A stretch of DNA of 64,000 bases from Selaginella moellendorffii. Its lineage: Eukaryota > Plantae > Lycopodiophyta. Under the pieces are notes generated by a model, which saw only the letters and a list, made by a program, of their open reading frames with translations, was not told the origin of the DNA and searched no databases. The stretch spans positions 1,685,471 to 1,749,470 of the forward strand of contig NW_003314285.1 in NCBI RefSeq assembly GCF_000143415.4, given 5' to 3'. Of the stretch, positions 17,662 to 46,773 are shown piece after piece. Within the stretch, counting starts at the first letter, position 1; each line of letters begins with the position of its first letter. The translations under genes were made by a program, and so were the position numbers.

Positions 17662-18564
17662 TTAATTGCATGGGTTTGTATTTGAAGCCCATAATACCCT
17701 CAATTTAGGATGTTTTAAAAATGTTTTTTGATGGGATTCATATAATACCAAATTACAGTCACTTTGAAGAGAAAGAAATGTTTTTACTATATCACAATTT
17801 CTCTTCTTATTACAATATATATTAGGAGACCAAACCATAATTGAATTTTCAGAATATAATACAATATTCCCATCTATTCCTATCTTAAATTCACAGTATT
17901 TAAACTTTGAAGATCCTTTATACCATTTTATATGATCTCCTACATATAAAGCAAGAATGCAATTTAAATGTAAATATAAATAAGCTTTATGATTTGGTGA
18001 TATTAAAAATTCAGTAGCTTTTAAAGAATTATAAGGCATGTTACTAATTAAAGTAGTGAGATCAATTCTACAATCATGTAATTTATTGAGCATAATACTT
18101 TGAATTTGTGGTAATTTATATTGAAAGTTTTTTTCTATAAACTCAATAGCATAATAACCACTCACTATTCTAATAAATCTTGCACGTAAATCTTGAATAC
18201 GAATACGATATAAATCCAATAGAGTAGTCAAACTTTGTCTTACATTATCACCATCATCTTGTTCATATTCAATAAGATTTCCTCCACAAGTTGTATCAAT
18301 AAATTTTCCATCTGAACTATAAAGCCATATTTGATTTGTCATGTTTAAAGGTCCATATATATCATCTTGTATTGTATAATCATATTGCATACTTTGACCC
18401 TTTGGCAACTCTCCTGATTTCGTGTTATTAATCATTAATTCAATAGCAGTAATAATTAAATTAACACTATCAACTGTCATACCATTCCTTCCACTATAAT
18501 TTATAGTTGATATAGTAGATTTAATATAGAAAATTAAGAATATAAAAAAATTTATTTTAAACAT
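17662..18564 (-). CDS. Secreted protein: unknown N-terminal domain plus C-terminal bulb-type (GNA) mannose-binding lectin domain
   Basis: 300-aa intronless AT-rich ORF. Signal-peptide-like MFKINFFIFLIFYIKSTIS, then lectin motifs DGNIVLY, QSDCNLVLY and VLWASNT. Paralogous to 45889-46773. Confidence 0.85.
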   Translation of the reverse strand: MFKINFFIFLIFYIKSTISTINYSGRNGMTVDSVNLIITAIELMINNTKSGELPKGQSMQYDYTIQDDIYGPLNMTNQIWLYSSDGKFIDTTCGGNLIEYEQDDGDNVRQSLTTLLDLYRIRIQDLRARFIRIVSGYYAIEFIEKNFQYKLPQIQSIMLNKLHDCRIDLTTLISNMPYNSLKATEFLISPNHKAYLYLHLNCILALYVGDHIKWYKGSSKFKYCEFKIGIDGNIVLYSENSIMVWSPNIYCNKKRNCDIVKTFLSLQSDCNLVLYESHQKTFLKHPKLRVLWASNTNPCN

Positions 18565-19204
18565 TGTAAAGTGAATTCTTAAAAGCTTTGAAATATGATT
18601 TGGTCTTTCAAAATTCTAACAAAAAAAACTTTATGTACCACACAAATGATGTGAAATTAATACTTTACACACATGACCTTCACGACATAAGTTGTAACAT
18701 AGCCATCTCAAAATTTGACAAATGGCTTAATAATAATTAATTAAATAAGTTTATATTATTTTAAAACTTTTTTCTAAGTAACAACATGTGGTAATATGTA
18801 TTTAAAAAATTATTATATTAAATTAGTCATAGAGAAATAACAGCAACAACAATTGCATTTAAGCCAGTCCTAGTGCTACAAGTACTAGTTCCTGTCGTAA
18901 GTGATGATAATCATCCACATTAAAGGACGTGGTAAGCTAGAGTTATGCATTGGAGAACTGCAAAAAACAAATTACTGCGCAATGCCAGGTATAAGTGGTG
19001 CTTTCCTCAGGCAAGTCACGCAACAACTCCTCCAGATCTTATGTGCATGAAGAGCAATAGTTACTACCTTTAGTCAAATGGCCAAGTTGAGTATAGCAAC
19101 AAAATCTTGAAGACCATTCTCTCAAAGCTCACTAAAGATTATTCACATTGACATTCAAGACTGCTGTGGCTGCCACTCCATTCTCTCTAATGTATGGAGT
19201 TGAG

Positions 19205-20882
19205 TGTGAGACACAAAATCCCTAGGCCCCAAAGTGGAGCTGGAAAGGGTGCCATGTGGTAGTGGCTGAAGTGAAAGCCAAACGAGCGTAACACGTTTGG
19301 ACTAAAAGCTCCGACTTGAAAGGTCGAGAACGGGAGTGGAACTCCCAACAAAGTGCTCGAGGAACAAGCACGAAGCGAGCAATAAGTGAGCCTCTAAAAA
19401 GGGACCCAAAAAGGACCAACACATGACACGTGGAAGTGTCCGAGGTGGAGTCTGAGGTGGAGTCCAAGATGGAGTCCGAAGTGGAGTCCGAGATGGACCG
19501 AGACAGAGTCCGAGATGGAGTCTGAGATGGACCGAGACGGAGTCCGAGATGGAGTCCGAGATGGACCCGAGATGGAGTCCGAGATGGAGTCCGAAGTGGA
19601 GTCTGAGATGGAGTCTGAGATGGACCGAGACGGAGTCCGAGATGGAGTCCGAGATGGAATCCGAGATGGAGTCCGAGAAGGACCCGAGATGAAGTCCGAG
19701 GTCGAGACCGAGACTGGGACTAAGACCGAGACCGAGACCGAGACTGGGACCGAGACCGAGACCGAGATCGGGACCGAGACCGAGACCGAGGCGGGGACCG
19801 AGACCGAGCCCGAGTCCAAGTCCGAGTCCGAGTCTGAGTCCGAGTCCGAGTCCGAGTCCGAGTCCGAGTCCGAGTCCGAGTCCGAGTTCGAGTCTAAGAG
19901 GGTGAAAGCCCAAAGCGTTCGTCTCCCAGACCCTGGGGGGTTTGGTGAGCTCCAAAAGTATAGTAAGGGGGAGGACTGCAGTGGAGCCAGTTTGGCCAGG
20001 AAAGGCCAGTTTGGCCCAGGAAGGCCAGACCCAGTGTTGGGTGATGAACTGACCACTGGGAAGTCCAAGACTAGAGTGAATACGGACCGACAAGCGGGGT
20101 AGCTTGGTGAAGTGTTCTAGTTCCCCCGGGAGATCGACTGGCCGATGCTCCCAGTCCAAGTGTGGGTGGCACTACCTACTTGGATACCAGGCGTGGCTCA
20201 ACGGAACCTCGCTCTAAGCCCATGGCTAGAGCACCTAAAGGCAAAAAGTGGGGAGAGTACCCAGGTGGCTCGCGTAAGGCCACGGTGTTCTGAAATGTTG
20301 TCCCAAAGGCCCAGACTGTGGAAAGGAAGAGGAGCAGTCCTCTGGGGTAGTGACCAAGGACACAGTCGTGTGGTGAGGAAGTCCCAGAAGACCGTGGGAC
20401 TTAGTGGTCAGGCCTGTGGGCCTCGATCCAGTGGTAGTGTTGGTGAACACGACCATGGGCAGAAAGGGACTTGGTGGGGACCAGAAAAGGGATATTGGGG
20501 AAGGCTATTCCTCACATCTGCGGGCATCCTAAGGATGCTAAGGAGTGGATCTGGAATGATCACTCATGGACGGATGGTCCAGTCCTTGAGAGACGGGATT
20601 CTGATGCAGGTGGTGTTAGACCACCGGTATGACCAAGGTAAAGGGGCATGGCCTTACCGTAACGGGCTAGTATGTCGGTGATACCTTGGGGTGTCGGTCT
20701 TAGGACCGGACACGTGGAGCACTTGGACTAAGTGCAAGGGATGAGTGGCATGGATGCCATTCTCGGGGCTAGCAAGTCCTAAGTTCTGAATTGGACTTAA
20801 GGAGGTGGTGAGTGAGACCCCTCCAAGTGGTCGAAGGTGTGGTTAAGTGACTAAAGTAGAATGGAAAAATTAATCGCTTACA
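19205..20882 (+). mobile_element. Solo LTR (1678 bp) of the same family as the 24219-37124 element
   Basis: TG...CA termini (tgtgagacac...cgcttaca), a 5-bp TSD TTGAG on both sides, and collinearity with the LTRs at 24219 and 35636. Confidence 0.93.
19435..19895. repeat. 6/12-bp tandem arrays inside the LTR (GAGATGGAGTCC, GAGACC, GAGTCC)
   Basis: Directly visible. Equivalent arrays occur at about 24400-24875 and 35818-36142. Confidence 0.9.
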
Positions 20883-23800
20883 TTGAGGCTATTCTCTCAA
20901 TTGAGCTCCAAATCCCTTCACTCTAGCTTGTTTTGCAATGTGCGGCTTAGTTTCAACTTACTGATGAGGAGCAGCTCCAAGCTTGGGCATGGGATCTTCT
21001 CAAACTTGATCAGCAATATTTGAGCACCTTCTTGCCACCAAGTGTAGGTACAAGGGACAACAAAATCAGTTCCAACAAAATGAGCTTTTTCCCATTGGCC
21101 AGTTTCTGATGCTTCAGGACTTTGCACCATTCACAAAGTTCTCTACTAGATGGCTTGGTCCTTTCTTCATGAAGAAGCATATTAGAGGTGGTGCCTACAT
21201 CCTCACAAATGAATCAAGCTAAGAGTTGCCCCATGCACATAATCACTGCCACCTCAAGCTCTTTCAGTAGTGAGCTGGCTTTATACTCTCCTTTCCTTCT
21301 TTACTTTTCTTTGCTTTTACCTTTTTTTTTTTGTCTCTTCTAGGATGTGATCCCAAAGGTGGAGCAAGCATAAGCCTGAATTTTCACCTCGAGGTTGCAA
21401 CAATTCCTCTTTGTCTAGAACTTTATGCATTTTCCAATTTGTTCCTTAAGGTTCCTAGGTTTTCACTACATCATTCTCCATCACTCACAGCCATCATCTA
21501 TTCATCTCTCTACTTTCTCTACCATAGTTTTGTACTTGATACAATTGCTTGCTCACTTTCCAATTGCTTTTCATGCCATGCACACACAATCTTAAGGATC
21601 CCATTACATCACTATCTTCAGCATCAATAGACATGGTAAATGAATCAAGCATCAGTAAAATCTGATACACAAACTCAAGATATGGCACGAACTCTCATGA
21701 TGCAACGATTTTGGGCAAATCTAAGACACTTAACTGTTGGTTTTTGAGAGCTAGTTGGACCTAATATGCACAAGAGACTAGGCATTACCATGGGTGGATG
21801 TTTTTTCTTGATCCCAATGATTTGTTCTAGCACAAGTAGTGATCCATGCAAGCACTAGCACAGATTGTGAGTGTTTTCTTCTTCCACTAGCACATGAACT
21901 GCAGGCCACTTTGACAGGTATCAGAGGCTGAAAAATCCCCTCCACTACCACTACATTACAATCAAACATTATATTCACCCATAGTCCATTTCTTTAGCCA
22001 TCATCTTCCTTCACTCCAGCAATTACCATCCCCAAGCAATACATTCACTCTACCACCCTATATCCTTGGAACTCGGCCATGCTGGAGGAATTTTCCAGAG
22101 GTGAGGGCACCTTGAGGTGGAATTCCAAGTAAGTGATTCTCCTCCATTTGGTTTTATGTATCTTCATTGATCCCTTTCTTTTTTTACTTAATTTTCCACA
22201 TTTTATACTTTGCTTTGGGTTGAGTGTCAAGTTCCCACTTCAAGTTTCCCCTCCGTGGTTTTCCTTTGAACCCAGAACTTCTCACTTCCTCCTGTTCTCT
22301 TTTCTTTCTTTTTCATTTATATTTTCTCACTTCTTCTTGCATTAGTGTTAGCATAATGTATCACATTGTAGTGGTTGTGGGTTTCTTGTATGCAATAGAG
22401 TCTGATGTGATCAATTATTTGTTAGTATATACATAAGTGAAATCCCTAAAATATTCCACTATCAGAATAATCTAGAGGTGTGAGGGATATGGGGTGGCTA
22501 AGGTTATGAAAGGGGGAGTTCACACAAGAGATTTTGAGTTACACTTGAGTGAAATGGAATCATGTGTTTTTCCCCATATTGAAGGGCTTCCCCCTCAACA
22601 ACATATACAGAAACAACTTAGTTTATAATTGACTTTGTTTACGACTTTGGTCTCGAGATTTGATGGTTTCTTCTGTTTTGGTTATTGATTGTGTGGAATG
22701 GGATGAGAGCATTAAGTAGCTAGAGAAGCTATTGCAAAATTGAAGTTGTCTATATGCAAGAATTCTAATAATAGTAACATTCACTATAACTTGAGACATA
22801 TGAGGATTTCTTTCTTAAGGGGTTTTTCATGTCTAGCTGCTAGTATCATCAAAATTTCTTGTATATTCTTAAAAATATATATTACTTTTTATATAATTTA
22901 AAATATATAAAGGTATTTTAAATAATAAAATTCTAATATTTCAATATTTTTATTTAATTAATTTTAATTAATTTTTTAATTTCAATATTTAAAAATAAAA
23001 TAAAATATATATTAAAAATAAATAAAAATTAAAGCTTTTGCATATTCCAAAGTATAGATTGAATCTTTAGTTATAAATAATTGTAGAAATACTCTCTTTT
23101 TTGCCTTAATCATAAAAGTTCTTATAGCCATATGCAAATAATTTAGTATCATATAGTTAATAGCTCATCTCAACATTGAAGGATTTACACTTTAACAAAT
23201 AAGCAATATAAGATATATGTGGTGGGAACTTTGTCATATATTTATTGTGGGGGTGGTGTGTGTTTAACCTCGAGAAAGCTCACCAAGATTATAAAACATC
23301 TATACCTAAATAGTTACTAAAGTCTAATCTCATTAATAATTTTTATTTAAATCCTCCTACATGCCTATTTATTATCTAGAGATAAATCCCTTTATCTTAC
23401 TATTTCTGTAAGTTGTCATTATCCCATTTCTTTCAGTGTTAGAGAAATGTGATCTTGCTCTTGAAGCTTTATCCCACCCTAAGAATTCTGCTCTAGAAAT
23501 TGGTAGAAAAATAGTAAGGAAAGGATATAAAAAAATTAAACTAAATTTTATAATTACATAAATTTTATCTAAGGTTTCTAAAATTATAATTTAAGATCTG
23601 TATAATTAGTAATTTATATTTTAAAATAAACTCAGATATTTTTATTGTTAAACCCCAAAACCTCTTAAATTAAACACACTCTAAATATTTAACAAACCTT
23701 AATAAAAGAGTGTTTTTCCCATATCAAGTAGTTCATTTTTATTTAGGACTGAGTTCTTAATAATAAAGAGTGTTAGGTGGTGTTCATTAACTTATTTGAA

Positions 23801-23979
23801 CTCTTTGATACTATGAATAAAAAAAGGCATTGCAAGGCTTATAATGTTGCTATAAACATCAATTTTAGCCATTATGTGCCACTAGAGTTAGAATTCCACA
23901 TTACATAAGAAATTTTATATATGGCATTATTTTTCATGGCATTCATGTTAATGTATGCCCATAAAATTTTACATATAAA

Positions 23980-24218
23980 TATTATTTTTTAGTGTTAATA
24001 ATATTATTTTAAAGTTATATTAGATAATATGGCATTGATGAAGATGTTCTATATGTTATTATATGAACTTTTATAAATGAAATTAAAAGAAATCTTTCAA
24101 TTACATAAAGTTTTTTATAGTAATATAGTTATTGGATATAAAAATAAATACATCTTATTATTAAATATGGTGTTTATATATATCACATAGTTGAGGAGAA
24201 AAGGAGTCTAAAAAAATA
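23980..24218 (+). pseudogene. 5' part of a third lectin-family paralog, disrupted by the LTR element
   Basis: ataatattatttt..., gaagatgttctatatgttattata..., ctttcaattacataaagt and aatatagttattggatat align in order with 45918-46120 of the intact paralog. Confidence 0.6.
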
Positions 24219-27138
24219 TGTGAGACACAAATCCCTAAGCCCCAAAGTGGAGCTAAAAGGGTGCCACGTGGTAGTGGCCAAAGCAAAAGCCAAACAAACG
24301 TAACACATTTAGACTAAAAGGCTCCAACTTGAAAGGTTGAGAGTGGGAGTGGAACTCCCAACGGAGTGCTCAAGAAATGAGCATGAAGTGAGCAATAAAG
24401 GAGTCTGAGATGGCATCCGAAATGGAGTTCGAGATGGACCTGAGATAAAGTCCGAGATGGACCGAGATGGAGTCTGAAATGGAGTCCGAGATGGAGTCCG
24501 AGATGGACCCGAGATGGAGTCCGAGATGGACTCGAGATGGAGTCCGAGATGGACCCGAGATGGAGTCCAAGATGGAGTCTGAGATGGAGTTCAAGATGGA
24601 CCAAGATGGTGTCCGAAATGGAGTCCGAGATAGACCTGAGATGGAGTCCGAGATGGACCGAGATGGGGTCCGAGATGGAGTCTGAGATGGACCCGAGATG
24701 GAGTCCGAAATGGACCCGAGATGGAATATGAGATGGAATCCGAGAAGGACCCGAGATGGAGTCTGAAGTCGAGACCGAGACCGGGACCGAGACCGAGACC
24801 AAGGCCGAGGCCGAGACCGAGCCCGAGTCCGAGTCCAAGTCCGAGTCCGAGTCTGAGTCTGAGTTTGAGTCTGAGAGGGTGAAATCCCAAAGTGTTCGTC
24901 TCCCAGACCCTGGGGGGTTTGGTAAGCTCCAAAAGTATAGTAGGGGGAGGACTCAAGTGGAGCCAGTTTGGCCTAGGAAGGCTGTGCCCAGGTGTTGGGA
25001 GACGGGATAACCACTGGGAGGTCCAAGGCTAGAGTGAATATGGATTATTAAGTGGGGTAGCTTGGTGAAGTGTTCAAGAGCCAGCTTTAGTTCCCCCAGG
25101 AGATCAAATGGTCGATGCCCCCAGTCCAAGTGTGGGTGGCACTACCTACTTGGATACCTGGCATGGCTCAATGGAACCTCGCTCTAAGCCTATGGCTAAA
25201 GCACCAAAAGGCAGAAGGTGGGGAGAGTACCCATGAGGCTTGCGTAAGGCCATGGTGTTCCGAAATGTTGTCCCAAAGTCCCAGACTATGGAAAGGAAGA
25301 GTGGACCTTTGGTGTAGTGACTAATGATACAATCATGTGGTGAGGAAGTCCTAGAAAACAGTGGGACTTAGTGGTCGGGCCTATGGGCCCTATCCCAGTG
25401 GCAGTGTTGGCGAACACGGCTATGGGCAGAAAAGAGACTTGGTGGGGATTATAAAAAGGATATTGTGGAAGGCTGTTCCCTATGTCTGCAGACATCTTAA
25501 GGATGCTAAGGAGTGGATCTTGGATGGTCACTATTGGATGGATGGCCTAGTCCTTGAGAGATGGGACTGTGATGTAGGTGGTGTTAGACCACCGGTGTGA
25601 CCAATGTGAAGGGGCATGGCCTTAGCTTAATAGGCTAGTATGTCGGTGGTACGGTCTTGGGACCGGGCACGTGGAGCACTTGGACTAAGTGCAATGGATG
25701 AGTGGCATGGATGCCATTCTCAGGGCTAGCAAGTCCTAAGTCCTAAATTGGACTTAAGGAGGTTGTGAATAAGACTCCTCCAAGTGGTCGGAGGTGTGGT
25801 TAAGTGACTAAATTAGAGTGGAAAAATTAGTCGCTTACAACTTGGTATCGGAGTTGTTCCTTAGTCCGAATTTTATTGGTGCTCAAGTATATCACCACTG
25901 GTGTTGGCATTGGAAGGTCCTAGAAGTGGGCCTATTTGTGAGGAGTAGCAAGTCGGGAAAACATGGCTCTTCACTATAGTTTATGTGTGAACTGTTAGGT
26001 GAGGTGGTGGATAGAAAAGGGCCAATAATGGAACGACTTTGGGATCTTGGGAACAGTATAAGGTTTTCCTCAAAGAGTTGAGGATGTGATCTAAATGAAC
26101 ATTTGACTCAGCAAATTGGCTAATGTAGTTGTGGTAAACAACTATAGTTGGGATCACGGGAAAAATAAAGACTCCGAAACCATAAAAGAGTCACAAGATT
26201 ATCCTCATATAGTTAAGGTTGGTGCTCATGAATTTGAGACCAAAATTAATGACTGTGGAAAGTCAAATACGGAAAAGGACACAAGTCTTTGAAATGGTAG
26301 CCAAGGCTACCCTTGATAAATGTTGGAACAACCTAAGGAATTAGGGGTGTACTTAGAAGATGAGTTGGTATTCTCATCACATGGACAAGTAGTCCAAAGG
26401 GGCAAAGGTTGCCCCAGGGAACAACATCAAGTGTTGGAGGTGACATTTGCAAAGAAGGGTTCTTGGGGGTAGGACATGAATACAGGAAGTGGTATTCCGA
26501 AAAGCTAGCACCTCAAATAGGACATTATGGGTCATTAGATTTTAAAGTCCAAAAATGCTAGATGACTCAAGTAGAGTCAAGGAATTGGTCCTAAGGGATT
26601 GCTAAAAGCATTTAGACTGAGGTGTGTTGTGCCCCACAAAGGTTGAGAAGGATCATAGGATCCAAGTATGAGAATAGTGAGTATCTCATCGATGGCGAAA
26701 TGGGCCATACTAAAGTTGTGGAGAAGGTGTTCCCAGAAGAAAACAACTTTGACACAAAGTTGTGAATAAACTCTATGATGCAATGCTAATGAATAGTTGG
26801 CATGAGAAAAAACTGTATTGGTCTTGGCAAAGACCTAAACATAAGTAACAAGTGTCATAAAGGTAAGTCTGTGGAGCCGATGGTGTGGAGACACCAAATG
26901 TGCCAAGGCGTGATGCTTTAAGGTGAGTTGGTGGGTTCACGAGAACCCCTTCCCAAAGGAATTCTAATGGAAATGGAAATAGCATAGCCTAAATTAGAAG
27001 GCATGCAGTTGGAGTGTGGTGACCCAGATAATGATGGAGGTGTGGAAGCACTAGCAATGAGTTGTAGGACTTGACAACTATAAGGCAACTAAGCAAAAGG
27101 TGCAAAATAATCAGTTAAACTGGTAGCAGGTAGCTACT

Positions 27139-32886: not shown

Positions 32887-35800
32887 CTACCCAAGACTTC
32901 TTAATGGCATAAGGAAGTTAGATATACCTTTATGGGGGGATAAATTGTTTATGTGCCGATATAGTAAGTCAATGTCATAAAAGGGAATGTTCGTTGGCAA
33001 AGATGCCATCATTAGGACACCCAAACACTCTAGAACACTAGGAGGTGTTGTTTGATATCACGAGGGCAATAGATAAGGCCCAAGAGACTAAGTTCTTAGC
33101 GAATGATGAATTGAAGGTGCTATCCAAACGTCTAAAGTTGCGAAGACGGGAGAAGTTCGTCTACCCGAATTAGACAAAGCCAAAAATGGAATTTTGGCAA
33201 GGCTAGTGATGGGCATATAAAGGCCCATATGTAGCAACATTAATCTTGGTATGTGGGATTATAAGGTGACCATACCCAGATTGAGGAACCACTCCCTAAG
33301 CTATTGGGTAGGTTCATCCCCAAGAATACTTGCTAAGGCATGGTAAAAAGTGCAAAACCATTCTCCTATTTTGGAGATGAATAACCGAAGGAAATGTGTG
33401 AGGCCAAAAGCAAGTAGTAAGGGGATAGAACCAAACCATAGGAATCGAAGAGTATAACCAAAGGTGGTTATATTAGTTGGGAGTAGAGAATCAAGTGGGC
33501 ACTCGAGCATGTTGTTACTAGCAATCGTAGTGCCATGAAGAGTCTAAAGCATGGAATTGTCTATTAAAAAGCTTGCGAAAGGAAAAGCTTTAGCAAGCTA
33601 AGGGACAAAGTTCCTTCAAGGTTCCCAAAGATAATTCTAGGTAGTGTAGTACTTAAAAAGCCAAGTGTAAATGGTTCATAAAACACACAAAATTAGAGTG
33701 GCATAGCAAAAGTGTGGTCTTGAAACTTGCCATAAAGCAATGCTATCAAGGTTGGGGAAATAGTTCCCGAGTGTTCAAAAGGATAACTTTCAACAAAAGT
33801 TGATGGTTAAGGACTTTTACGCTTATGCATGAAACCATGTTACATTGGTTGAATGACTTGCTAAGCGAGAATGGCAAGTCAGGGGAATGAATCCCCTAGT
33901 TGAAGGTGCTAACTTCAAAAGGGGTGGCCCATGGGGCCAAACATGGAAGAGTCCATGCATGATCATAGACTTGTCAAGTGAGAGGACTTGGCAATTTAGA
34001 GAGACTAGATTCCTAAGCTATGATTCGTAACGTGCTTTGGATATAAATTGGTGCACTGGCGCGGGGAGTCATGCCAAGCATCTAGGGTGATGCTGTCCGT
34101 AGATGCATATACGAAGGTTGGGTTCAAGTCCCAACCCTCTAGTGCTTGGGTTCGAGTCCCAAATCACTAGGGCGAAGTGATGATTTGGAATATGAGGACA
34201 CTCATATTTCAGTGGTCATGGACTCTCAATGAGGAGATTGGCTTGGGCACACCACAAAGCGGGGGATGCCCCGGAGTCATGATGTACAGTTAGATTGCTT
34301 AGAGTGAAAGTTCGGTATATCTAATTTGAATACTTTGGTGCAAAAGGCACCAAAGACGTGGTGAATGAGATGGGGACACTCAGTCTCAATTGCTATGGAT
34401 CCTTGGCTAGAAGGGCTAGCTTGGGCACACCACCAAGCGTGGGGGATGCCCCCGGGGTCATAGTCAACAATTTAAAAGGGTCTGAAAGACTTAGTTCTTA
34501 TTGGTAGACTTGTTAAGGGGTCAAAATAAGATCACTAGGTAATCTTATAGCTAAACAAGGACAAAGTCTTTGTTTGGGTTAAGGAATATAATTCCTAGTT
34601 CAAAGTGTTGAGTTGAACTATTGAGAATGGTGTGGCTTGGTCAAGGTGACTAAGTGGGAAGGACACTTAAAGGGAAATCAGTTGTACCAAAACGATGGTA
34701 TAATAAGTCCAAGAAAATAGTCTCTAGGAGAGACCTATGGGAGGGTTACAAAGTTGGGTCGTGGACGAAACTTGTGGCAGAAAATGCTAAAGAGACCTAT
34801 TAGAGGTGAGCACCCTCTGGACTTAGCAAAGTAGAGCCTTTGCCACAGAACCAAAAAGGATATCTCGAGAATGGAGGTAGTGATCCTATGTTGCCCAGTG
34901 CAACAATCAATAGATAAAAGCAAAAGACTAGTAGCCAAATGTGGGCCATGGAGTTCATTGGAAGGAATACAAATAGCAAAGTTAGGTATGGAACATTATG
35001 TTGGATACTAACAGATTGTGAGAAAGGAAATGTGCTTCCAAGGATGGATTCCTAAATGCTCCAAGTTGGCAAAGGTGAAAGCTCCAAGGGAGGGAGCGGC
35101 AAAGTAGCCAAATGATAGGGCCGTGGACAACTCTAGCACAACTTACGATAGCTGGAACTTAGTGCCAAAGGTGGCACAAAATAGAAAGGAGAATGATGGT
35201 GCCCTCAAGTGGAAAATTTTCTAAGATAGGGAAGTGAAGTTGCACAATATGTGCAATGAAAGGTGTTAAAGACACCAAAGAAATTGACTTCGAGAAGTCA
35301 AAATTAAAAGTTCCAACGTGAACTGGTTATATCAATAGAAGTTGAGACTACTCGAGAATGAATAATGGGATTGAGCTAGAAAAGGTGTTTCTAATGAGTT
35401 TAGCGAGAGCTAAACCAATAAAAGGGAGAGAACCACTTGAGGTGGTTAAATGAGTCTTTATGTTGGAGACACTATGCTCCTTAGAGGTTGGACAAGGCAT
35501 GGCAAGCCTTCGGTGTAAAACTATTGATAAATATGGGCTAGGTGCCAAAGATGGAAAAGGTAATACATGCTGGTGTTACTTTATAAAATGGTTTATCATT
35601 CGATAAGGACATCAAACTTTGTCGATGGGTGGTGTTGTGAGACACAAATCCCTAAGCCCCAAAGTGGAGCCAAAAGGGTGCCATGTGGTAGTGGCCAAAG
35701 CGAAAGCTAAACAAACATAACACATTTGGACTAAAAGGTTCCAACTTGAAAGGTCGAGAGCGCGAGTGGAACTCCCAACGGAGTTCTCAAGAAACAAGCA

Positions 35801-37129
35801 TGAAGTGAGCAATAAAGGAGTCCGAGATGGACCCAAGATGGAGTCTGAGATGGAGTCCGAGATGGACCGAGATGGGGTCCAAGATGGAGTCCGAGATGGA
35901 GTCCGAGATGGAGTCCGAGATGGACCCGAGATGGAATCCGAGATGGAGTCCGAGAAGGACCCGAGATGGAGTCCGAAATCGAGACCGAGACCGAGACCAA
36001 AACCGGGACCGAGACCAGGACTAGGACCGGGACCGAGACCGAGACCGGGGCCGAGGCTAAGACCGAGCCCAAGCCCGAGTCCAAGTCCGAGTTTGAGTCC
36101 GAGTCCGAGTCCGAATCCAAGTCCGAGTCCGAGTTCAAGTCTAAGAGGGTGAAAGCCCAAAGCGTTTGTCTCCCAGACCCTGGAGGGTTTGGTAAGCTCC
36201 AAAAGTATAGTAGGGGGATGACTCAAGTGGAGCCAGTTTGGCCTAGGAAGGCTGTGCCCAAGTGTTGGGAGACGGGATAACCACTGGGAGGTCCAAGGCT
36301 AGAGTGAATACGAACTGTCAAGTGGGGTAACTTGGTGAAGTGTTCAAGAGTCGGCTTTAGTTCCCTCGGGAGATCGAATGGTCGATGCTCCCAGTCCAAG
36401 TGTGGGTGGCACTACCTACTTGGATACCTGGCGTGGCTCAACGGAACCTCACTCTAAGCCCATGGCTAAAGCACCAAAAGGCGGAAGGTGGGGAGGGTAC
36501 CCATGAAGCTTGCATAAGGCCACGGTGTTCCGAAATGTTGTCCCAAAGTCCCAGACTATGGAAAGGAAGAGGAGTGGACCTCTGGTGTAGTGACTAATGA
36601 TACGGTCATGTAGTGAGGAAGTCCCAGAGGACAATGGGACTTAGTGGTCGGGCCTATGGGCCCTGTCCCAGTGGCAGTGTTGGCGAACACGGCCATGGGC
36701 AGAAAAGGGACTTGGTGGGGACTGTAAAAGGGATATTGGGGAAGGCTGTTCCCCATGTCTGCGGACATTTTAAGGATGCTAAGGAGTGGATCTTGGATGG
36801 TCACTACTGGACAGATGGCCTAATCCTTGAGAGACAGGACTGCGATGCAGGTGGTGTTGAACCACCGATATGACCAAGGTGAAGGGGCATGGCCTTAGTG
36901 TAATAGACTAGTATGTTGGTGGTACCTTGGGGTGTTGGTCTTGGGACCGAGCACGTGGAGCACTTGGACTAAGTGCAAGGGATGAGTGGCATGGATGCTA
37001 TTCTCGGGGCTAGCAAGTCCTTAAGTCCTGAATTGGACTTAAAGAGGTTGTGAATGAGACTCCTCCAAGTGGTCGGAGGTGTGGTTAAGTGATTAAATTA
37101 GAGTGGAAAAATTAGTCACTTACAAAATA

Positions 37130-37409
37130 TTTCTTCCTAAGCTCAAAAATAAGTTGAGACTCCATAGACGTTTCTGTTCCAGAGTTCAGATTTAATCTTT
37201 GGATAAAGAATTGATTCCTTATTTAGAGATGAATAAATATTATGAGTTATTATTAGAACAGATATTAGTAAACTTTAACAAGATTATATTTGAGATATGT
37301 TAAATTTTGCTGCTTCATTTATTATTCTAGAAACTAGATATTTTTTAAAAATCATTATAATAATTTTAATTCTATTTTATCTTACTGGAATTCAATTTCG
37401 TTTTGCTAA
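37130..37409 (+). pseudogene. 3' part of the disrupted third lectin-family paralog (internally deleted)
   Basis: atgttaaattttgctgcttcatttattatt matches 46240-46270 (MLNFAASFII). It ends WNSISFC* like WDSKTFC* of the intact copy, but most of the lectin domain is missing. Confidence 0.75.
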
Positions 37410-37541
37410 TTAGTATTTTATTAATTTTTAGTTATTATTTTTAATAATTCATTGTGAGTATCTATGACTTATAATGACTTATTATTGATATATTTGATAT
37501 AAAATGAATTATTTAAAAATCAAATAATTTTAATAAATATG

Positions 37542-39314
37542 TTAGACAAGAGAACATATATGGGCAAATAGCACAAATGCCCCTGCATTTTTTTCATCCA
37601 GCCTTATTACTTCTTCCATTGCTGCCAATCCACATTTTTCATTTTTGACACTTTTACAAGCTCCAAGCAAGCATCGCCAGTCAAGCACATTTGGCTCAAC
37701 TGGCATTTCTCTTATTAGATCATTGGCATTATCTAAATACCCAACACGACCCAGAAGATCTATCATCCAGCAAAAGTGTTGCCTCTCCGGCCAAATTCCA
37801 AAGTCTCCTATCATCGATCTAAACAATGAGAGCCCTCTTTCGATATCTCCTTTATGGCTGCATGCCATGAGGGCACTTGCAAAGCTAATTCCATCAGGAA
37901 TTTCAGCAGCCATCTTAAGCAAATGAGAAACTTCTAAAGCTTCAACGGGATATCCACTTTGAGCATATGCAGCTAGCATAGCATTCCATGCAATTAAATC
38001 ATGATTTTGCATCCTATCAAACAAAACCTTTGCTTGGGCAATGTTCCCAGAACGTGCAAATGCTGTTAATATTGTAGTCCAGGAAACCAAGTCCACTTCT
38101 GGCATTTGGAACATGAATTCCAGCATAAGCTTCAGATGCCCCTGGGCGGCATATGCTAAGAGCATTGCATTCGTGACAGCCATGTCCCACCCTTGCATGG
38201 AATCATATACGTGCTTAGCTTCTTCCACAAAACCGTGTTGCCCATAACATACTAGCATCACAGAGAAAGTTATGGAGTCCTTCTCAGGCATCAAGTCAAG
38301 CAAGAGCTCCGCTTCTTTGATATACCCGTTGTGGGCATATCCCGTCAGCATGGTGTTCCATGAAGCTTGTGTTCTCTCTGGCATGGAATCAAACACTGCT
38401 CTAGCCTTGTCAAGATCCCCGATTTGGTTATATGCTGTCACCATTGCTCCCCACGAGACAACACTGCGTTCCTCCATTTCATCAAATATTTTCTCTGCCA
38501 GTCTCAAGTTTCCAGCTCGAACGTAAGCGACCAACAAGACAGTCCATGACACGGAGTTTCTCTCAGGCATCGTATCGAACATTCTCTCGGCATCTTGGAG
38601 CTTCCCTTTCTGAGCATATGCGCTCAGCATCGATGTCCACGACACAATGTCTCTCACTTCCATTTCCTCAAAGATTTCCTTTGCGCCATCGAGAATCTGG
38701 GTTTGAGAATATCCACAGAGCATTGCCGTGGATGAGACGAGATCTCTCTCGGGCATGCCATTATAGACCTCTCTAGCGCCATGCGTATGCCCGTTCCAGG
38801 TATATGCTAGGATCAAAGCCGTCCACGAGGAGAGATTCCTCTCTGGCATCTGGTCAAACACGCGTCCCGCATCCTCGACCCGACCGTTGCTTCCAAATGC
38901 CGCCACCAGTGTGTTCCACGAAACAATGTCCCTCGCGGGCATCTCCAAGAATGTCACTTTTGCTTTCTCCAGATGCCCTTTGTGGGAATATGCAGAGAGC
39001 ATGAAGTTCCAGGAGAAAATGTCCTTGCGGGGAATGCTATCGAATATTCGCCGGGCCGAGCTGATGCTCCCGCACTTGTCGTAGAGCTGCAGAAGCATGT
39101 TTGCGACGAATGAATCCGACGCAAGGCGGTGCTCCACTCGCGAGTGAACTTCCTTGGCCATGGATAGTGTCGTGCACGATCTGATAAGCTCCAAGCACGC
39201 ATTTCGATCGAGCGGCTTCTCTCCATGCATTTCTTTTGCTCTTGGCTTGTCATTGGAAAGGAATCCAATGCTAAGTGGCAACCAAAGTAGTATAACTTTC
39301 TCGGAGAAAATCAA
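37542..39314 (-). CDS. PLS-class PPR protein made of tandem short (about 31-aa) motifs with a truncated E domain
   Basis: 590-aa ORF (first ATG at 39230; true start uncertain) with repeated FDxMPERxxVSWT motifs, HFCWMIDLLGRVG and WRCLLGAC. It ends at FVLFAHICSLV. Confidence 0.88.
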   Translation of the reverse strand: MIFSEKVILLWLPLSIGFLSNDKPRAKEMHGEKPLDRNACLELIRSCTTLSMAKEVHSRVEHRLASDSFVANMLLQLYDKCGSISSARRIFDSIPRKDIFSWNFMLSAYSHKGHLEKAKVTFLEMPARDIVSWNTLVAAFGSNGRVEDAGRVFDQMPERNLSSWTALILAYTWNGHTHGAREVYNGMPERDLVSSTAMLCGYSQTQILDGAKEIFEEMEVRDIVSWTSMLSAYAQKGKLQDAERMFDTMPERNSVSWTVLLVAYVRAGNLRLAEKIFDEMEERSVVSWGAMVTAYNQIGDLDKARAVFDSMPERTQASWNTMLTGYAHNGYIKEAELLLDLMPEKDSITFSVMLVCYGQHGFVEEAKHVYDSMQGWDMAVTNAMLLAYAAQGHLKLMLEFMFQMPEVDLVSWTTILTAFARSGNIAQAKVLFDRMQNHDLIAWNAMLAAYAQSGYPVEALEVSHLLKMAAEIPDGISFASALMACSHKGDIERGLSLFRSMIGDFGIWPERQHFCWMIDLLGRVGYLDNANDLIREMPVEPNVLDWRCLLGACKSVKNEKCGLAAMEEVIRLDEKNAGAFVLFAHICSLV

Positions 39315-39429
39315 ACCTTAAAATTTCTCCCAAGGAAGAGTTCGATAGATTTTATCAAACTTTCCTTCGCACTGAAAATCGAAAGGACAGCAGTGCTCAA
39401 AGCAAGGAGAAATTGAAATGATACCGGAA

Positions 39430-39990
39430 CATTTATTACCGGTAAACAACTCGCGGGTGTCGGACCAATGTCGAGAGCTCTCGTTCGACGATCCGGTGGG
39501 ATGATGGAGAGGTTCGTGATCCGTGCTCCACCCTCGGAGCACCAGCCATCGCACTGGATCTTCAGCTTCTTTGTTGGCGTTGAGCAGCTTCTTCTTTGAC
39601 TTCTGCTTGTGAGACTTCATCTCGCGGGAAGAGTGTTTAAAGCAAAATTTGGATGAACATTTTTGTTACCTTCACTCTGGAAATGTCTATGCCTTTATCC
39701 TTGAGAGTGCTGGGAAATCCTCCCAGGTTGGGCGGTAGACTGTGAGCTTCAAGCAACTGTTGCTGCCAAACACATGAGCTTGTACTGAGCTATGAAACGC
39801 AACTATTTGGAATGCCGTTTCCATTTCCATTACATTCATTGTCGTTGACATGAGAGAGGGGGTCTCCTCTAGCTTTGACCCTTCGTGGCTCAATGCCTCC
39901 TCAACAGTAGTCGCGAAGCTCGCTGCTTCATCGCTCACAGAATCCATTCGGACACATTGTTGGCCTTGAGCAACTTCTTCTTTGACTTTT
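39430..39990 (-). pseudogene. Rearranged duplicate of the 3' exons of the IQM gene
   Basis: gtcgagagctctcgttcgacgatc, ccaccctcggagcaccagccat, gttaccttcactctgg and gctcgctgcttcatcgctcac match 48040-48610, with block order partly shuffled. Confidence 0.85.
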
Positions 39991-41547
39991 AGCAAATAAA
40001 AGATGTTCTATCAAGTTTATACTCGTCAAACTTTTATATCTTCTGGAGAGGTGTCAGATTAGTACATATATATACTAATGTGCAGATAACTATTGCATAT
40101 GAACCATCTGAGTGGATTGGATTTGGTTCATTTGGATAATGACAGTAATATGCTTGAAAATTAGATAGAAGGTATCTATAGTAGATAGAATATTTTATTT
40201 TATTTTTAAAACAAAAATACATTATTAAACATTGTGAGGGCCAAGTGTACGGCTACGATGCCGTATACTAATATTAGCGTAGTGGATTTTGGTAGCCGTC
40301 GGATTGGTTTCAATCCGGACCACTCGCTCCTGTATATAAGCTAGGGTTTTTGGGTTAATTGATATGCACATTTCTGTATTCCCTTTCTATATTCCATGCA
40401 CTCACATTGGTGGAGGTGAGGGGCACCTTTGATTGTCCCTGGGGAGTGCTTGGATTTGGGATTTCGGTTTAGATCTAGCTTTTGCATTGTCTAGATCTAG
40501 CTTTTTCCATTTCCTTTCTTTTGTTCTTTCCTTTCAGGATTTTGGTTTAGATCTAGCTTTTTGCATTGTCTAGATCTACCATTTCTTTCTAGCTTTTTGT
40601 CATTTCTCTTCTTTTGCTCTTTCTTTCTCATTCATTTTCATGGCCGATCCGCAATCTCCTCCTTTGACTCTAGAGCAGCAGTTGGTTCAATTGCTTGATG
40701 CTATGCGCCTGCAATTGAACAACCAAACTCAGTTGATGGCGGCGTTCACGGCACATGGTACAACTCCTCTTGCTTTTGGTGCCAATCCTCGCGTTCGGCC
40801 GGAGTTCTTTCGTGGGAATCCTGGGGATGATGTGTACCATTGGTTCGATCACTTCACGGTGATTGCCACATATCATTCTTGGGATGATGCTCGGCGTTTG
40901 CGTGAGTTCCCCACATGTCTTCAAGGGACGGCATTGCAGTGGTACAATGGATTGAGCGCAGCTACTCGTGGCGATTGGAGTGTTCTTCCGGACGTCTTCA
41001 AACTCGCCTTCGGACACGCCGACGATTGTGATGATGCCTTCCAACAATTGCATCGTCTTCGCCAAGGGCCATCTGAGTCGGTGATGCAATTTGGCGTTCG
41101 TTTCCGAAGTCTTTTGCTTCGTGCGGAGCCAAATATGTCGGAGCGGATCAAGCTAGGAATGCTGTGGCCAGCACTTCGTCAAGATCTTGTCGGACTTGTG
41201 CATGCACTTGCTCCTGCCACTCTTGACGATGCTCTTCGCTTGGCACAACGTTATGAGACGTCGCCTCTTCCACTTCTTGCTACACGTCCTTCAGCTCCAC
41301 TTCCTATGAGTGATGGTCCTGTTCCCATGGAAGTTGATGCTGCTGCTACTTGAGTCCAAGGACAAGGGCGAGGACGTGGTCGTGGCCGTGACATTCGTTG
41401 CTGGGCGTGTGATGAAGTTGGTCATACTTATCGGCGTTGTCGGCGCTTTCCGGATTGGCGACCTCCATTTCCTGGGTGGAGACCTTGGCGTCAGCAACGT
41501 CCCGTTGGTGCTGCTGCGGTGGAAGGTTTGGATACCGAGGTGCATTC

Positions 41548-41611
41548 GGGAAACGAGGAGTCGCGCGAGTAATGGAGGGACCTTGCGCGAATAAGTTAGT
41601 GACCCCTCCAT
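41548..41611 (+). other. -1 programmed ribosomal frameshift signal (slippery heptamer plus H-type pseudoknot)
   Basis: G GGA AAC at 41548-41554, 6-nt spacer, stem 1 tcgcgcgag/cttgcgcga, stem 2 atggaggg/ccctccat. The pol ORF is in the -1 frame. Confidence 0.85.
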
Positions 41612-42912
41612 CTTTCTTTCGGGAGTATCATCAAGGGGTTCACTCGGCACCGGTTCATCCAGTGTTTACTTTCCAAGCTCGTTTTTATAACAAGAGGTCT
41701 CCTATTCTTCTCTCCGTGTTGGTTGATACAGGTTCGAGTTTATCTTCTATTGCTCGACCTGTTGCCACACGTTGTCGTCTACACTTGCGTCATGCGGCAG
41801 ATCCAGTTTTCATTCTTTATGGCAACGGCCGTACACATGCATGTGCACGAGATGAGGCGGACCTGGTTGTGCGTGTGGGCGATCTCAAGCTTGAGTTGCA
41901 GTCGTTGCGGGTGGTGCCGAGTCAAGCTTTTGACCTCATTCTTGGTATGGATTGGTTGCAGCACAATCATGCCAAGTGTGACTTTGAGGCTTTTCCCCCT
42001 TGTCTCATACTTCCTTATGTTTCATCCATTCCTCTCACTTCTGTACCTCTTCGTCCCTCTACTTCTACCTCTGCTTCCATTACTTTTGTTCCCCCATTAT
42101 TTCCTCTTGTGTTTCCATCTTGTTCTGCTCTTCCCTTTTCCGATCCCTCCGATGATCTTTGTGTTGCAGCTGTTGATCAGCTCATGAAGGAGTATTCTGA
42201 TCTCTTTGAATTTGACCTATCGTCTGGGGCCAAGATTGCCACATGTCATCCCATTCCAACCGGGGATGCTCGTCCAATCAAGGTTCCTGTTCGTCGTCGG
42301 TCACCCAAGGAGATCAAGATTTTACGTGCAAACGTCAAGGAGATGTTGGAGAAGGGTGTTATTCGGAAGTCGCGGAGTCCTTGGGCATGTGAACCTCATC
42401 TTGTGACGAAGCCTGATGGGAGTATTCGTTTCTGCATCGACTATCGTTCGTTAAATGAAGTGACGATCCCGGACGTGTACCCTCTTCCTCACACTGCTGA
42501 TCTCTTGGATCGTCTGGGGCGAAGTCGTTGGTTCACCAAGCTAGATCTTGCTTCTGGGTATTGGCAAGTACCGATGGCTGAAGACGATATTCCTAAGACT
42601 GCTTTTCGTACACCATTTGGTTTGTACGAGTTTTTGGTGATGCCGTTTGGTTTGAACAATGCTCCAGCAACTTTTCAGCGAATGATGGACGAGGTTCTTT
42701 GCGATATGCCAGAGGTGACGGCTGACTTCATTGATGATGTCTTGATCCACTCGGAGGGGACGTGGGAGGAGCATGTTCGTGATGTTTGTAAAGTGTTGGA
42801 TCGGCTACGCGATGTTGGTTAAAGCTGAAGCGGTCGAAGTGCGTGTTTGGGTCCAAGGACACAACTTATCTTGGGTACCGTATTTCTCGTGAGGGTTTGC
42901 AAGTTGATCCTG

Positions 42913-43439
42913 NNNNNNNNNNNNNNNNNNNNNNNNNNNNNNNNNNNNNNNNNNNNNNNNNNNNNNNNNNNNNNNNNNNNNNNNNNNNNNNNNNNNNNNN
43001 NNNNNNNNNNNNNNNNNNNNNNNNNNNNNNNNNNNNNNNNNNNNNNNNNNNNNNNNNNNNNNNNNNNNNNNNNNNNNNNNNNNNNNNNNNNNNNNNNNNN
43101 NNNNNNNNNNNNNNNNNNNNNNNNNNNNNNNNNNNNNNNNNNNNNNNNNNNNNNNNNNNNNNNNNNNNNNNNNNNNNNNNNNNNNNNNNNNNNNNNNNNN
43201 NNNNNNNNNNNNNNNNNNNNNNNNNNNNNNNNNNNNNNNNNNNNNNNNNNNNNNNNNNNNNNNNNNNNNNNNNNNNNNNNNNNNNNNNNNNNNNNNNNNN
43301 NNNNNNNNNNNNNNNNNNNNNNNNNNNNNNNNNNNNNNNNNNNNNNNNNNNNNNNNNNNNNNNNNNNNNNNNNNNNNNNNNNNNNNNNNNNNNNNNNNNN
43401 NNNNNNNNNNNNNNNNNNNNNNNNNNNNNNNNNNNNNNN
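42913..43439. other. Assembly gap (N run) within the RT/RNase H region
   Basis: Run of N bases. Confidence 1.
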
Positions 43440-45265
43440 GCTCGATGGGCTTTGAAGCTTCAGATATATGATTTCGATGTTGTTCATCGCCCAGGGAGTT
43501 CTATGGCTGATGCTGATGCCCTTTCTCGAGCTCCTCTTCCTTCTCCACTCACTTCTCATGTTTCTGATGAACCTGTTGTTCCAGCATCTGTGGATTTTCT
43601 AGATGAGGATTCTGTGCCGTCGGCGGTTGCTGTCCTTGACGTTTAGTGTCCACAGGGCGTAGAGCAAGATCTACCTTCTCTGGATGAGGTTCGCGAGGCT
43701 CAAAAGATTGAGCCGTGGATTCTAAGGCTTCGAGATGGGTTTGAGAATCTTGCATCACTTGCTGATGACTTGCCTTTTCGGCATTTACATTCTCAATATC
43801 GCCTTGAAGATGGCCTTCTTTATTTTGTGGGAACGGATCCTGATGCTCATTTACGGCTAGTGGTGCCTTCGGTGTTTATTCCGCGGTTTCTCCATGCCTA
43901 CCATGATTCTCCTATTCTAGGTGGGCATATGGGACACCGTCGTGTCACCGAGAAGTTGCACAGATCTTTCTATTGGCCAGAGATGCGACGTGATATTATC
44001 CGGTATGTGCGTAGCTGCGTTTGGTGCCAAGCTCGTAATACTCCCCCTTGTGCTGCGGAAGGACGGTTGGAGTCAATTGCAGTTTCTCGTCCGTTTGAGT
44101 TGGTGGTGTTTGATCTTATGGGACCTTTTCCGCGATCGACTGCTGGCAATGAGTATGTTATTATTGCTTCTGACTACTTGACTCGTTGGGTGGAAGTTGG
44201 TGCTCTTGCTAGTGCCTCTGCAACTGCTGTTGGATACTTCCTCCTCAATCGAGTGGTGTTCCAGCATTCTTGTCCAGAACGGATTCTTTCGGATAATGGT
44301 CCTGCATTTATGGCTGAGGTATTTCATGTTTTGACATCTCGGTTGGGGATACGCCACACTTTTACGAGTGCTTATCATCCACAATCAGACGGTCTGGTGG
44401 AACGGCTCGTTCGGACATTCAAAGGGATGATTGCGAAGTATGTGAACTTTCAACATTCGGATTGGGATGGTTATTTGCCGTCTCTTCGGTATGCTTATGT
44501 CACAGGGGTGCAGAGTTCTGTTGGTGCTTCACCATATAAACTTCTATATGGTCATGATCCAATATTACCAACAGAGCTAGGTTTACCTTCGCGATTGCCA
44601 CGAACTCCTGATGCTAGGTCATGGGATCAATATTTGACAAGCATTCTTCCACTTGTCCGAGCAGAGTCTACTGAACACTTAGGCCGCGTACAAGTGGGAC
44701 AACAACGGCGCTACAATTCCCATCATCGTCCACCAGCGGAGTACAAAGTGGATGATTTGGTGTTAGTCCGTTTTCCCCATCTTACGGTACGTGGTTTATC
44801 TAAGGGGCTCCTTGCGCAGTGGAAAGGACCGTATCGGGTGTTGCGGCAAGTTGGACCACAAGTTTATGAGGTTCGGCATGACGTTCAGCAGGCTGATCCT
44901 CCGGAGATTGTGCATGTGCAGCGGTTAAAACGCTTCATACAGAGGGATCAGGAGCAGTTAATACCGTCTACAGATCCACCGATGCCTCCTCCTGACGTTC
45001 CTCCAGATCCCGGCCCATCTACAAGAGAATCCTGACGGCCTTCCATTATTCCGAGAGGAGGGGATGATGTGAGGGCCAAGTGTACGGCTACGATGCCGTA
45101 TACTAATATTAGCGTAGTGGATTTTGGTAGCCGTCGGATTGGTTTCAATCCGGACCACTCGCTCCTGTATATAAGCTAGGGTTTTTGGGTTAATTGATAT
45201 GCACATTTCTGTATTCCCTTTCTATATTCCATGCACTCACAACATAAAATATAATAAATTATTTT

Positions 45266-45313
45266 CTATATACATACATATATATATATACAAACATACA
45301 TATATATATATAC

Positions 45314-45386
<73 letters not shown>

Positions 45387-45430
45387 TATCTATACATACA
45401 TACATATATATACATATATATCTATACATA
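45266..45430. repeat. (TA)n / TACA microsatellite
   Basis: Directly visible. Confidence 0.97.
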
Positions 45431-45888
45431 TTGTCACACCCTTGTACCATTTAATCCTACAATAGTTTAAATAAAATTACCAAGAATTGATTCTAGGAAA
45501 TACAGCTATGCCCAGCTCAAATTAAAATATAAAAAATTAATATTTTGAAGCTTTATATATGCCCAGGCTCCTTCGCAGGGAGATCACACCACTAGCAAAG
45601 ATGCTCCAATTGGTGGGATTAGGGGGGTGCTGAGCATAATCTGGCCACGGGGTAGTGTCTTTGGGAATGGCCCACCCTGCCATGGAACAGCCCGAAAGAA
45701 GGTGCTTGAATTAGATTTATTATTGTATTTACCTTATAACTCTATTTTTTACTCTTACTTTAATTAAAGTAAGAATCATATATACATTCAAAGGTATCTA
45801 TATTATACTATATATAATTTTATTTTAAACTAAACTTTAATGAGCTTTAATAAAAAAAATTAATATCTTAAAATGTTTTGTAGTTACT

Positions 45889-46773
45889 ATGGGAGTAGTG
45901 ATTATTGCTTTAATTTCAATAATATTGTTTAGAATTTCTTTTGCACAATATGAAGTTGGAGATGTAGGTGTTATAAAGAAAGAAGCTGTACATATTATCA
46001 TACAAACTCTTCTAAATACAATTAGTGAGATACCAGATAGTAGCCTTCCAACTATGCAAAGTATTCATGGAAGTATAAATATTGAATTTGAAGATACAAC
46101 AAATATTGTTATTGGATATGGTATTTTTATTTTTCGAACAATTGGGGAAATTTGTAATATAGAATTTGGAGAAGATGAAGTATCAGGAAGTGTTATACGA
46201 AATTTATTAAATAAACGTTTACAAGATTCTACTTTAAAGATGTTAAATTTTGCTGCTTCCTTTATTATTTTAAAACATAAGTATTTTAATATTTATTATT
46301 ATGTTAGAGATTATAATCATCAACAAAATAGAAGACAACAAATGTTTGTAGAACATCCAAAATGCAGCATATTTTCAAGTATTTTAATTAGTGGATATAC
46401 TAATATGCCTCATCAATATTTATTATCAACACAATTTCTAATTTCTTCAAATAGAGAGGCTTATTTATATTTAAGTATTGATTGTAAATTACATATATAT
46501 AAAGGAAATAATAATTTATGGTCTTCAAAAAACTTAATTGAAGGAATTAATTGCATTTTAAGAGTACAAGAAGATGGAAATTTAGTTTTATACTCTGATA
46601 ATAATAGAGTTGTTTGGGCTTCAAATACATACTGCACTTATCAAAATTGTTTTAAAGATACATATTTATTTATGCAAAATAATTGTAATTTAGTTTTATA
46701 TACTACGCATCAGAAAACTTTTACCACTAATCCTAAAGTAGAACTTGTATGGGATTCCAAAACATTTTGCTAA
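45889..46773 (+). CDS. Secreted protein: unknown N-terminal domain plus C-terminal bulb-type (GNA) mannose-binding lectin domain
   Basis: 294-aa intronless AT-rich ORF. Signal peptide MGVVIIALISIILFRISFA, lectin motifs QEDGNLVLY, VVWASNT and QNNCNLVLY. Shares FLIS-N--AYLYL and HQKTF---PK with 17662-18564. Confidence 0.87.
   Translation: MGVVIIALISIILFRISFAQYEVGDVGVIKKEAVHIIIQTLLNTISEIPDSSLPTMQSIHGSINIEFEDTTNIVIGYGIFIFRTIGEICNIEFGEDEVSGSVIRNLLNKRLQDSTLKMLNFAASFIILKHKYFNIYYYVRDYNHQQNRRQQMFVEHPKCSIFSSILISGYTNMPHQYLLSTQFLISSNREAYLYLSIDCKLHIYKGNNNLWSSKNLIEGINCILRVQEDGNLVLYSDNNRVVWASNTYCTYQNCFKDTYLFMQNNCNLVLYTTHQKTFTTNPKVELVWDSKTFC

Follow-up and report, generated by a model that had tools for sequence, protein, structure and literature searches.

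How can genes go on coding at a G+C content of third codon positions (GC3) near 0.1 within an otherwise GC-balanced plant genome, and what sort of protein do such genes encode? The question is raised by two intronless open reading frames, ORF1 and ORF2, in a stretch of 64,000 nucleotides from the spikemoss Selaginella moellendorffii (RefSeq assembly GCF_000143415.4, contig NW_003314285.1, positions 1,685,471 to 1,749,470 of the forward strand). I will refer to the whole stretch as the window and count positions from its first nucleotide. The two frames are a real, selected and unannotated spikemoss gene pair. The reading I favour, with moderate confidence, is that they belong to a native family of secreted proteins in which a GNA-type lectin domain follows an N-terminal domain with a probable DUF26/Gnk2-like fold, and that the proteins may act in defence recognition. 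The features of the pair are as follows.

17662 to 18564, minus strand: ORF1, an intact intronless gene of 300 amino acids, with a signal-peptide-like start, an orphan N-terminal domain and a GNA-type lectin domain
18040 to 18501, minus strand: N-terminal domain of ORF1 (residues 22 to 175), an orphan alpha+beta domain with a single cysteine, C93, plus a linker cysteine, C165
17665 to 18039, minus strand: lectin domain of ORF1 (residues 176 to 300), with six cysteines, a degenerate site I, G in place of Q at site II and the canonical QxDxNxVxY at site III
45889 to 46773, plus strand: ORF2, an intact intronless gene of 294 amino acids with the architecture of ORF1
45946 to 46401, plus strand: N-terminal domain of ORF2 (residues 20 to 171), the modelled domain, whose top fold matches are Gnk2/DUF26 proteins
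46402 to 46770, plus strand: lectin domain of ORF2, with six cysteines, a degenerate site I, a canonical site II and N in place of D at site III
17001 to 19000: AT-rich, CpG-poor block around ORF1, GC 0.28
45601 to 47100: AT-rich, CpG-poor block around ORF2, GC 0.27

A preliminary description of the DNA, made from its letters, had picked out both frames as intact, intronless and AT-rich, with coordinates and strands that proved exact. The layout it gave them, a signal peptide, about 150 unassigned amino acids and a bulb-type lectin domain, is present in both, the signal peptide being putative and assigned by reading of the short hydrophobic segment that opens each protein. ORF1 and ORF2 are paralogues, 32% identical over about 270 aligned residues (residues 32 to 296, approximately; E-value 7e-38), with 22% identity in the N-terminal half and 43% in the C-terminal half. 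The mature proteins have eight cysteines each, all at matching positions: six belong to the lectin domain and one each to the linker and the N-terminal domain. Neither protein found itself in database searches, and a look-up of the exact proteins for transcription or annotation returned no record; the genes are therefore unannotated in the public collections. When ORF2 or the alignment of the two was used in word-based searches, the matches were confined to the C-terminal lectin and no full-length relative came up; a literature search found no description of the architecture, and no full-length family already described was found to match the pair.

The coding DNA of both genes has a GC content of 0.25, a GC3 of 0.14 (ORF1) and 0.11 (ORF2), as against 0.50 to 0.65 in neighbouring genes, and a ratio of observed to expected CpG of about 0.3. 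Given such base frequencies, 9.4% of codons should be stops, which puts the odds of an open frame of 294 to 300 codons at about 1e-13 for each gene. The remaining five frames of each contain 14 to 43 stops apiece, and shuffling the AT-rich blocks 500 times produced no open frame longer than 117 to 128 amino acids, compared with the 300 and 294 observed. Those odds and those maxima, taken together, mean that the frames are not open by chance. The preliminary description had suggested selection, on the ground that the proteins are strongly diverged yet open in stop-prone DNA; the suggestion is borne out by the odds, by the conservation of the eight cysteines and by a ratio of nonsynonymous to synonymous substitution rates (dN/dS, method NG86) of 0.36 between the C-terminal domains, which is not near 1. 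Third positions in the N-terminal domain are saturated, making its dN/dS uninformative. The bias has remodelled the proteins as well: FYMINK residues make up a fraction of 0.39 to 0.41 of ORF1 and ORF2 and of 0.20 to 0.26 in the products of neighbouring genes and in fern proteins considered below. This change in protein composition may be why sequence searches fail. As for the cause of the bias, a candidate is methylation-driven drift from C to T, which would fit the CpG deficit.

The C-terminal domain is a GNA-type lectin domain of about 120 amino acids, all three subdomains of which align with GNA-type lectins. HMMER matches it to many PF01453 proteins with E-values of 1e-20 to 1e-24; the Pfam B_lectin profile gives ORF1 and ORF2 19.3 and 29.0 bits, under its gathering score of 32.4. 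Judged by its motifs, each copy retains one textbook mannose site, and it is a different site in the two (site III in ORF1, site II in ORF2). The domain shares with the monocot mannose-binding lectins of the GNA type (PF01453), such as the Gastrodia antifungal protein, the three-subdomain repeat, motifs of the type QxDxNxVxY, the conserved cysteine pair of subdomains I and II, a secreted precursor (putative in the present case) and a domain length of about 110 to 120 amino acids. Unlike those lectins, ORF1 and ORF2 have one canonical site of three each, a Cys-x5/6-Cys loop before site III, an insert of about nine residues in subdomain III, a score below the Pfam cut-off, an extreme AT-driven amino-acid composition, and 150 amino acids of orphan domain ahead of the lectin domain. 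The joining of an extracellular GNA domain to a further recognition domain recalls the G-type (S-domain) lectin receptor kinases and S-locus glycoproteins. Those proteins, however, carry the GNA domain at the N-terminus, ahead of SLG, PAN, transmembrane and kinase regions; ORF1 and ORF2 have none of these regions, and their lectin domain is C-terminal. The frames stop directly after the lectin domain, and a Pfam scan of the two proteins detected no S-locus glycoprotein, PAN or kinase domain.

Sequence searches with the N-terminal domain were negative throughout. Pfam yielded no N-terminal family for either protein and no PF01657 at E-values up to 1 (full proteins) or up to 10 (isolated domains). 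An exhaustive profile search with the alignment of the two domains against 1.84 billion representatives gave one match (E-value 4e-4), which is spurious and was rejected as a 12-fold tandem-repeat protein. A sequence-profile search of PDB found nothing below an E-value of 0.39 and no DUF26 chain at E-values up to 10, and language-model searches of the Atlas gave no usable match for either domain. Nor is the domain a cryptic lectin repeat, a possibility ruled out by an hhalign probability of 0.3%. Neither a catalytic motif nor an enzyme family was detected in it. The hallmark of DUF26 is a set of six conserved cysteines forming three disulfides, including the motif C-8X-C-2X-C (PMC6368629); the domain has neither the six cysteines nor the motif, its only cysteine being C93 in ORF1 and C89 in ORF2, apart from that of the linker.

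Predicted structure gave more. An AlphaFold2 model of the N-terminal domain of ORF2 alone has a pLDDT of 47 and a pTM of 0.49, with core elements at 53 to 64. The model of full-length ORF1 has a pLDDT of 36 and is useless as a replicate: a fold search with it missed even the known lectin domain, and its meaningless matches show no drift towards DUF26. The models are weak because only two sequences of the family are available. The order of elements is alike in the models of ORF1 and ORF2 (helix, strand, strand, helix, strand, strand), the C-terminal strand of the domain differing between the two proteins. When the ORF2 model was compared by Foldseek with PDB, the first eleven matches included PDLP8 (probability 0.99), PDLP5 and Gnk2 (TM 0.52 by target). 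In the ESM Atlas the nearest cluster is labelled "Gnk2-homologous domain" and has PF01657 in 100% of its members (TM 0.55 over 104 residues, root-mean-square deviation 3.1 Å); the second is a cluster of CRK kinases with PF01657 (TM 0.51), and the next match falls to TM 0.38. Against 48,161 chains, five of the six top matches belong to one fold group. In each of three structure libraries the model thus finds its best matches among proteins of the DUF26 fold. A library of viral structures returned only noise (TM 0.36 or less).

The resemblance that the preliminary description had proposed, to a cysteine-poor Gnk2/DUF26 fold, is therefore partly supported: the ORF2 model brings up that fold in three libraries, and neither sequence, profile nor cysteine motif adds to it. 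The modelled domain is like the DUF26/Gnk2 proteins (PF01657: CRRSPs, CRKs and PDLPs) in its core of about 110 amino acids, its two helices on an antiparallel sheet and the order of its elements, and the plant DUF26/Gnk2 proteins are secreted, as ORF1 and ORF2 putatively are. It is unlike them in the lack of sequence similarity and in its one cysteine instead of six, and mannose-binding residues are not demonstrably conserved. The fungal lectins LDL and Y3 demonstrate that a DUF26-like fold is possible with fewer disulfides. As accepted fold relatives, they superpose on PDLP5 at about 2.4 to 2.6 Å over 75 to 78 residues (PMC6368629). Genuine single-DUF26 proteins are present in Selaginella (PMC6368629). 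By kind, ORF1 and ORF2 would, on these models, be GNA lectins fused to a DUF26-like domain that lacks the disulfide cysteines of that family; the literature surveys searched contained no fusion of DUF26 with GNA.

The strongest competing account accepts the genes as real and holds that the N-terminal domain has a new or unrelated alpha+beta fold, its likeness to DUF26 being an artefact of an idealised and poorly determined AlphaFold model. The domain could then be an effector or an enzyme-like head delivered by the lectin. I regard this as a serious minority possibility. It is opposed by the concentration of the top matches from 48,161 chains in one fold group, by the agreement of two further libraries and by the gap in score that follows the two PF01657 clusters of the Atlas; the enzyme version is opposed besides by the failure to detect a catalytic motif or enzyme family.

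On the reading I favour, ORF1 and ORF2 would be native members of a dispersed, fast-diverging family of secreted proteins, each of some 30 kDa. A GNA-type beta-prism lectin, with one mannose pocket predicted from its motifs, would make up the C-terminal half, and the N-terminal half would most likely be, as far as the models go, a lectin fold of the DUF26/Gnk2 type without the three disulfides of that family. The eight conserved cysteines probably form four disulfides, which would stiffen the lectin domain and tie the N-terminal domain to the linker. The variable N-terminal domain may serve as a fast-evolving recognition head, and the whole as an extracellular, two-headed protein that recognizes carbohydrates or microbial surfaces in defence. 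By analogy, its likeliest targets would be glycans or proteins on microbial surfaces. The analogy on which the defence role is proposed is with Gnk2, the maize CRRSPs and antifungal proteins of the GNA type: one GNA-type database match to the lectin domain of ORF1 and ORF2 bears, in its source, the name of an antifungal protein, and Gnk2 and the maize CRRSPs bind mannose and act against fungi (PMC6368629).

Defence is not the only role that such proteins might have. They could take part in self recognition or recognition between cells, as secreted proteins that lack a kinase and pair with a receptor kinase whose ectodomain is the same, in the manner of SLG and SRK. The rapid divergence of the N-terminal domain, at 22% identity, would suit such a role. 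The window contains no kinase form of ORF1 or ORF2 and no S-locus glycoprotein or PAN domain, and I judge this role to be rather unlikely.

Might the two frames instead be silent relics, unexpressed and lying in methylated DNA that drifts towards AT, in which stops have not yet been acquired? They are absent from all public gene calls, their CpG ratio of 0.3 suggests long-term methylation, and a sister copy has already decayed. Its remains, together with those of a neighbouring pentatricopeptide repeat (PPR) gene, are found at the following positions.

37221 to 37361, plus strand: relic of a third copy, about 140 nucleotides, closest to ORF2, with two in-frame stops
37542 to 39314, minus strand: PPR gene of unit A, intact and convergent with the relic
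47432 to 48642, minus strand: decayed pieces of a PPR gene downstream of ORF2, in unit B, with 70 to 90% nucleotide identity to 38447 to 39990

The relic is 74.6% identical in nucleotides to positions 46164 to 46302, which encode approximately residues 102 to 133 of ORF2. The preliminary description had counted a third, broken copy with the architecture of the other two. The copy exists, reduced to a length at which no architecture is visible. It marks one side of a segmental duplication that copied a convergent pair of lectin and PPR genes (unit A, 37001 to 39990; unit B, 45889 to 48642) in which decay has been reciprocal: unit A keeps its PPR gene and has lost the lectin gene, and unit B keeps ORF2 and has lost most of the PPR gene, an N-terminal remnant of which is still open at 47489 to 47749. 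Against the view that ORF1 and ORF2 are on the same road stand the frequency of stops expected at their composition, at which neutral drift would quickly close a frame of 300 codons, the openness of both copies at 32% identity with core residues and all eight cysteines kept, and the dN/dS of 0.36 in the C-terminal domain. I consider it improbable that they are relics.

Elsewhere in the window, an AT-rich block of 1.75 kb (22601 to 24350; GC 0.25, CpG observed/expected 0.14) has no open frame of 80 or more amino acids, and tblastn for a further broken copy of the lectin family in this and the other AT-rich blocks found nothing significant.

There remains the origin of the pair. Among 177 proteins with the lectin domain, a loop of the form Trp..Cys-x(4-7)-Cys..QxDxN occurs only in ORF1, ORF2 and four proteins of the fern Adiantum (P0018, P0057, P0058 and P0059). 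The fern proteins are also like ORF1 and ORF2 in having a signal peptide, an N-terminal region with a single cysteine and no Pfam family, and a cysteine just before the lectin domain, so that the layout of eight cysteines is shared along with the Cys-loop subtype of lectin. They are unlike them in a low-complexity linker of about 100 amino acids, a normal composition and two canonical sites. Between the N-terminal region of the fern proteins and the N-terminal domain of Selaginella no significant similarity was found (hhalign 0.1%; permutation z of -0.2 to 1.5). A colinearity of the two seen by eye was rejected on those z values, as compared with about 7 in a positive control. The link to ferns is accordingly one of lectin subtype and layout, not of the N-terminal domain.

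Around ORF1 and ORF2 I found no inverted or direct terminal repeats, no terminal inverted repeat or long terminal repeat (LTR) elements, no target-site duplications and no transposase. The composition of the genes is regional and no mark of foreignness, since a conserved, multi-exon host gene of the window, for an alpha-mannosidase-like glycosyl hydrolase of family 47 (exons within 10574 to 12044; GC 0.32 to 0.38, CpG observed/expected 0.12 to 0.31), is equally AT-rich and CpG-poor. Native plant genes are favoured by the three observations together: the Cys-loop subtype shared with ferns, the lack of mobile-element termini and the regional composition. A foreign origin, by horizontal transfer from an organism or virus of AT-rich composition or as the cargo of a transposon, would account for the aberrant composition of the genes (the GC3 contrast with neighbouring genes given above). 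It is favoured also by the bacterial and metagenomic proteins that give the best E-values to the lectin domain and by the situation of the genes among retroelements. It is very improbable given the absence of element termini and transposase by either frame (the closest proteins encoded by elements are those of separate retroelements), flanks and a host gene that are equally AT-rich and CpG-poor, a lectin subtype common only to fern proteins, the lack of a viral fold match to the ORF2 model, and an identity of 32%, which implies that the copies have long been resident in the genome.

The surroundings call for a correction, as the preliminary description had set the family in an AT-rich transposon core. 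The span from 17662 to 46773 mixes PPR genes with fragments of retroelements, a repeat family and AT-rich blocks. One mobile element in it is context only, lying outside the lectin gene family:

40233 to 45241, plus strand: complete, young Ty3/gypsy-type LTR retroelement

Its LTRs (40233 to 40406 and 45068 to 45241) are 174 bp long, 100% identical, end in TG..CA and have ACAT on both sides, and its open frames encode gag-like, protease-reverse transcriptase and integrase proteins. An assembly gap, a run of N at 42913 to 43439, lies inside it, with protease and reverse transcriptase to the left and the end of RNase H plus integrase to the right; as both sides carry parts of the same element, I count one young element. 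The gap occupies the place expected for RNase H. Over 2.4 kb separate it from ORF2; it touches neither gene of the pair and has no bearing on them. Directly after the 3' LTR, at 45254 to 45431 and about 460 bp upstream of ORF2, is a long (AT)n/(ACAT)n microsatellite. The repeat family consists of three GC-rich copies (19205 to 20500, 24219 to 25468 and 35636 to 36741) of 75 to 86% identity, each adjoining an AT-rich block; their internal 12-nucleotide tandem arrays yield long artefactual Gly-Leu and Ser-Asp frames.

Further from the pair, 4878 to 15747 holds three long intronless PPR genes: 4878 to 7562 on the minus strand (with an E motif), 7613 to 9754 on the plus strand (with a DYW deaminase) and 12928 to 15747 on the plus strand. 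On the other side are a BAHD-type acyltransferase (51149 to 52237, minus strand), a weak Methyltransf_29-like open frame (60220 to 61791, plus strand) and a LysM receptor kinase (61879 to 63990, minus strand) with a LYK/CERK1-like ectodomain and a kinase, whose frame ends 10 bases from the end of the window.

What is new in these observations is the evidence from fold searches for a Gnk2/DUF26-like domain, the single canonical mannose site of each copy, the Cys-loop link to ferns and the reciprocal decay of the lectin-PPR pair. They change no major paradigm, concerning as they do a lineage-restricted family of putative function. A bolder version is that the N-terminal domain is a genuine disulfide-free lectin of the DUF26 fold and that the proteins, with the fern proteins of the same lectin subtype, represent an old dual lectin of vascular plants, DUF26-like plus GNA. 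I hold this to be doubtful, though worth stating for its consequences. Were it true, ORF1 and ORF2 would be the first plant proteins known to have the DUF26 fold and lack its cysteine motif. They would form a bridge from the DUF26 of plants to the LDL and Y3 lectins of fungi, and would be the first in which both antifungal lectin types are fused. Annotation and detection by sequence would have missed this dual lectin because its signal was erased by extreme AT mutation pressure and fast evolution. Surveys of plant lectins use annotated proteins and Pfam hits, neither of which picks up the family. Should the fold assignment hold, the DUF26/Gnk2 fold would be possible in plants even where the disulfides regarded as its defining feature are lacking, and the extracellular recognition proteins of plants would include a new two-lectin architecture.

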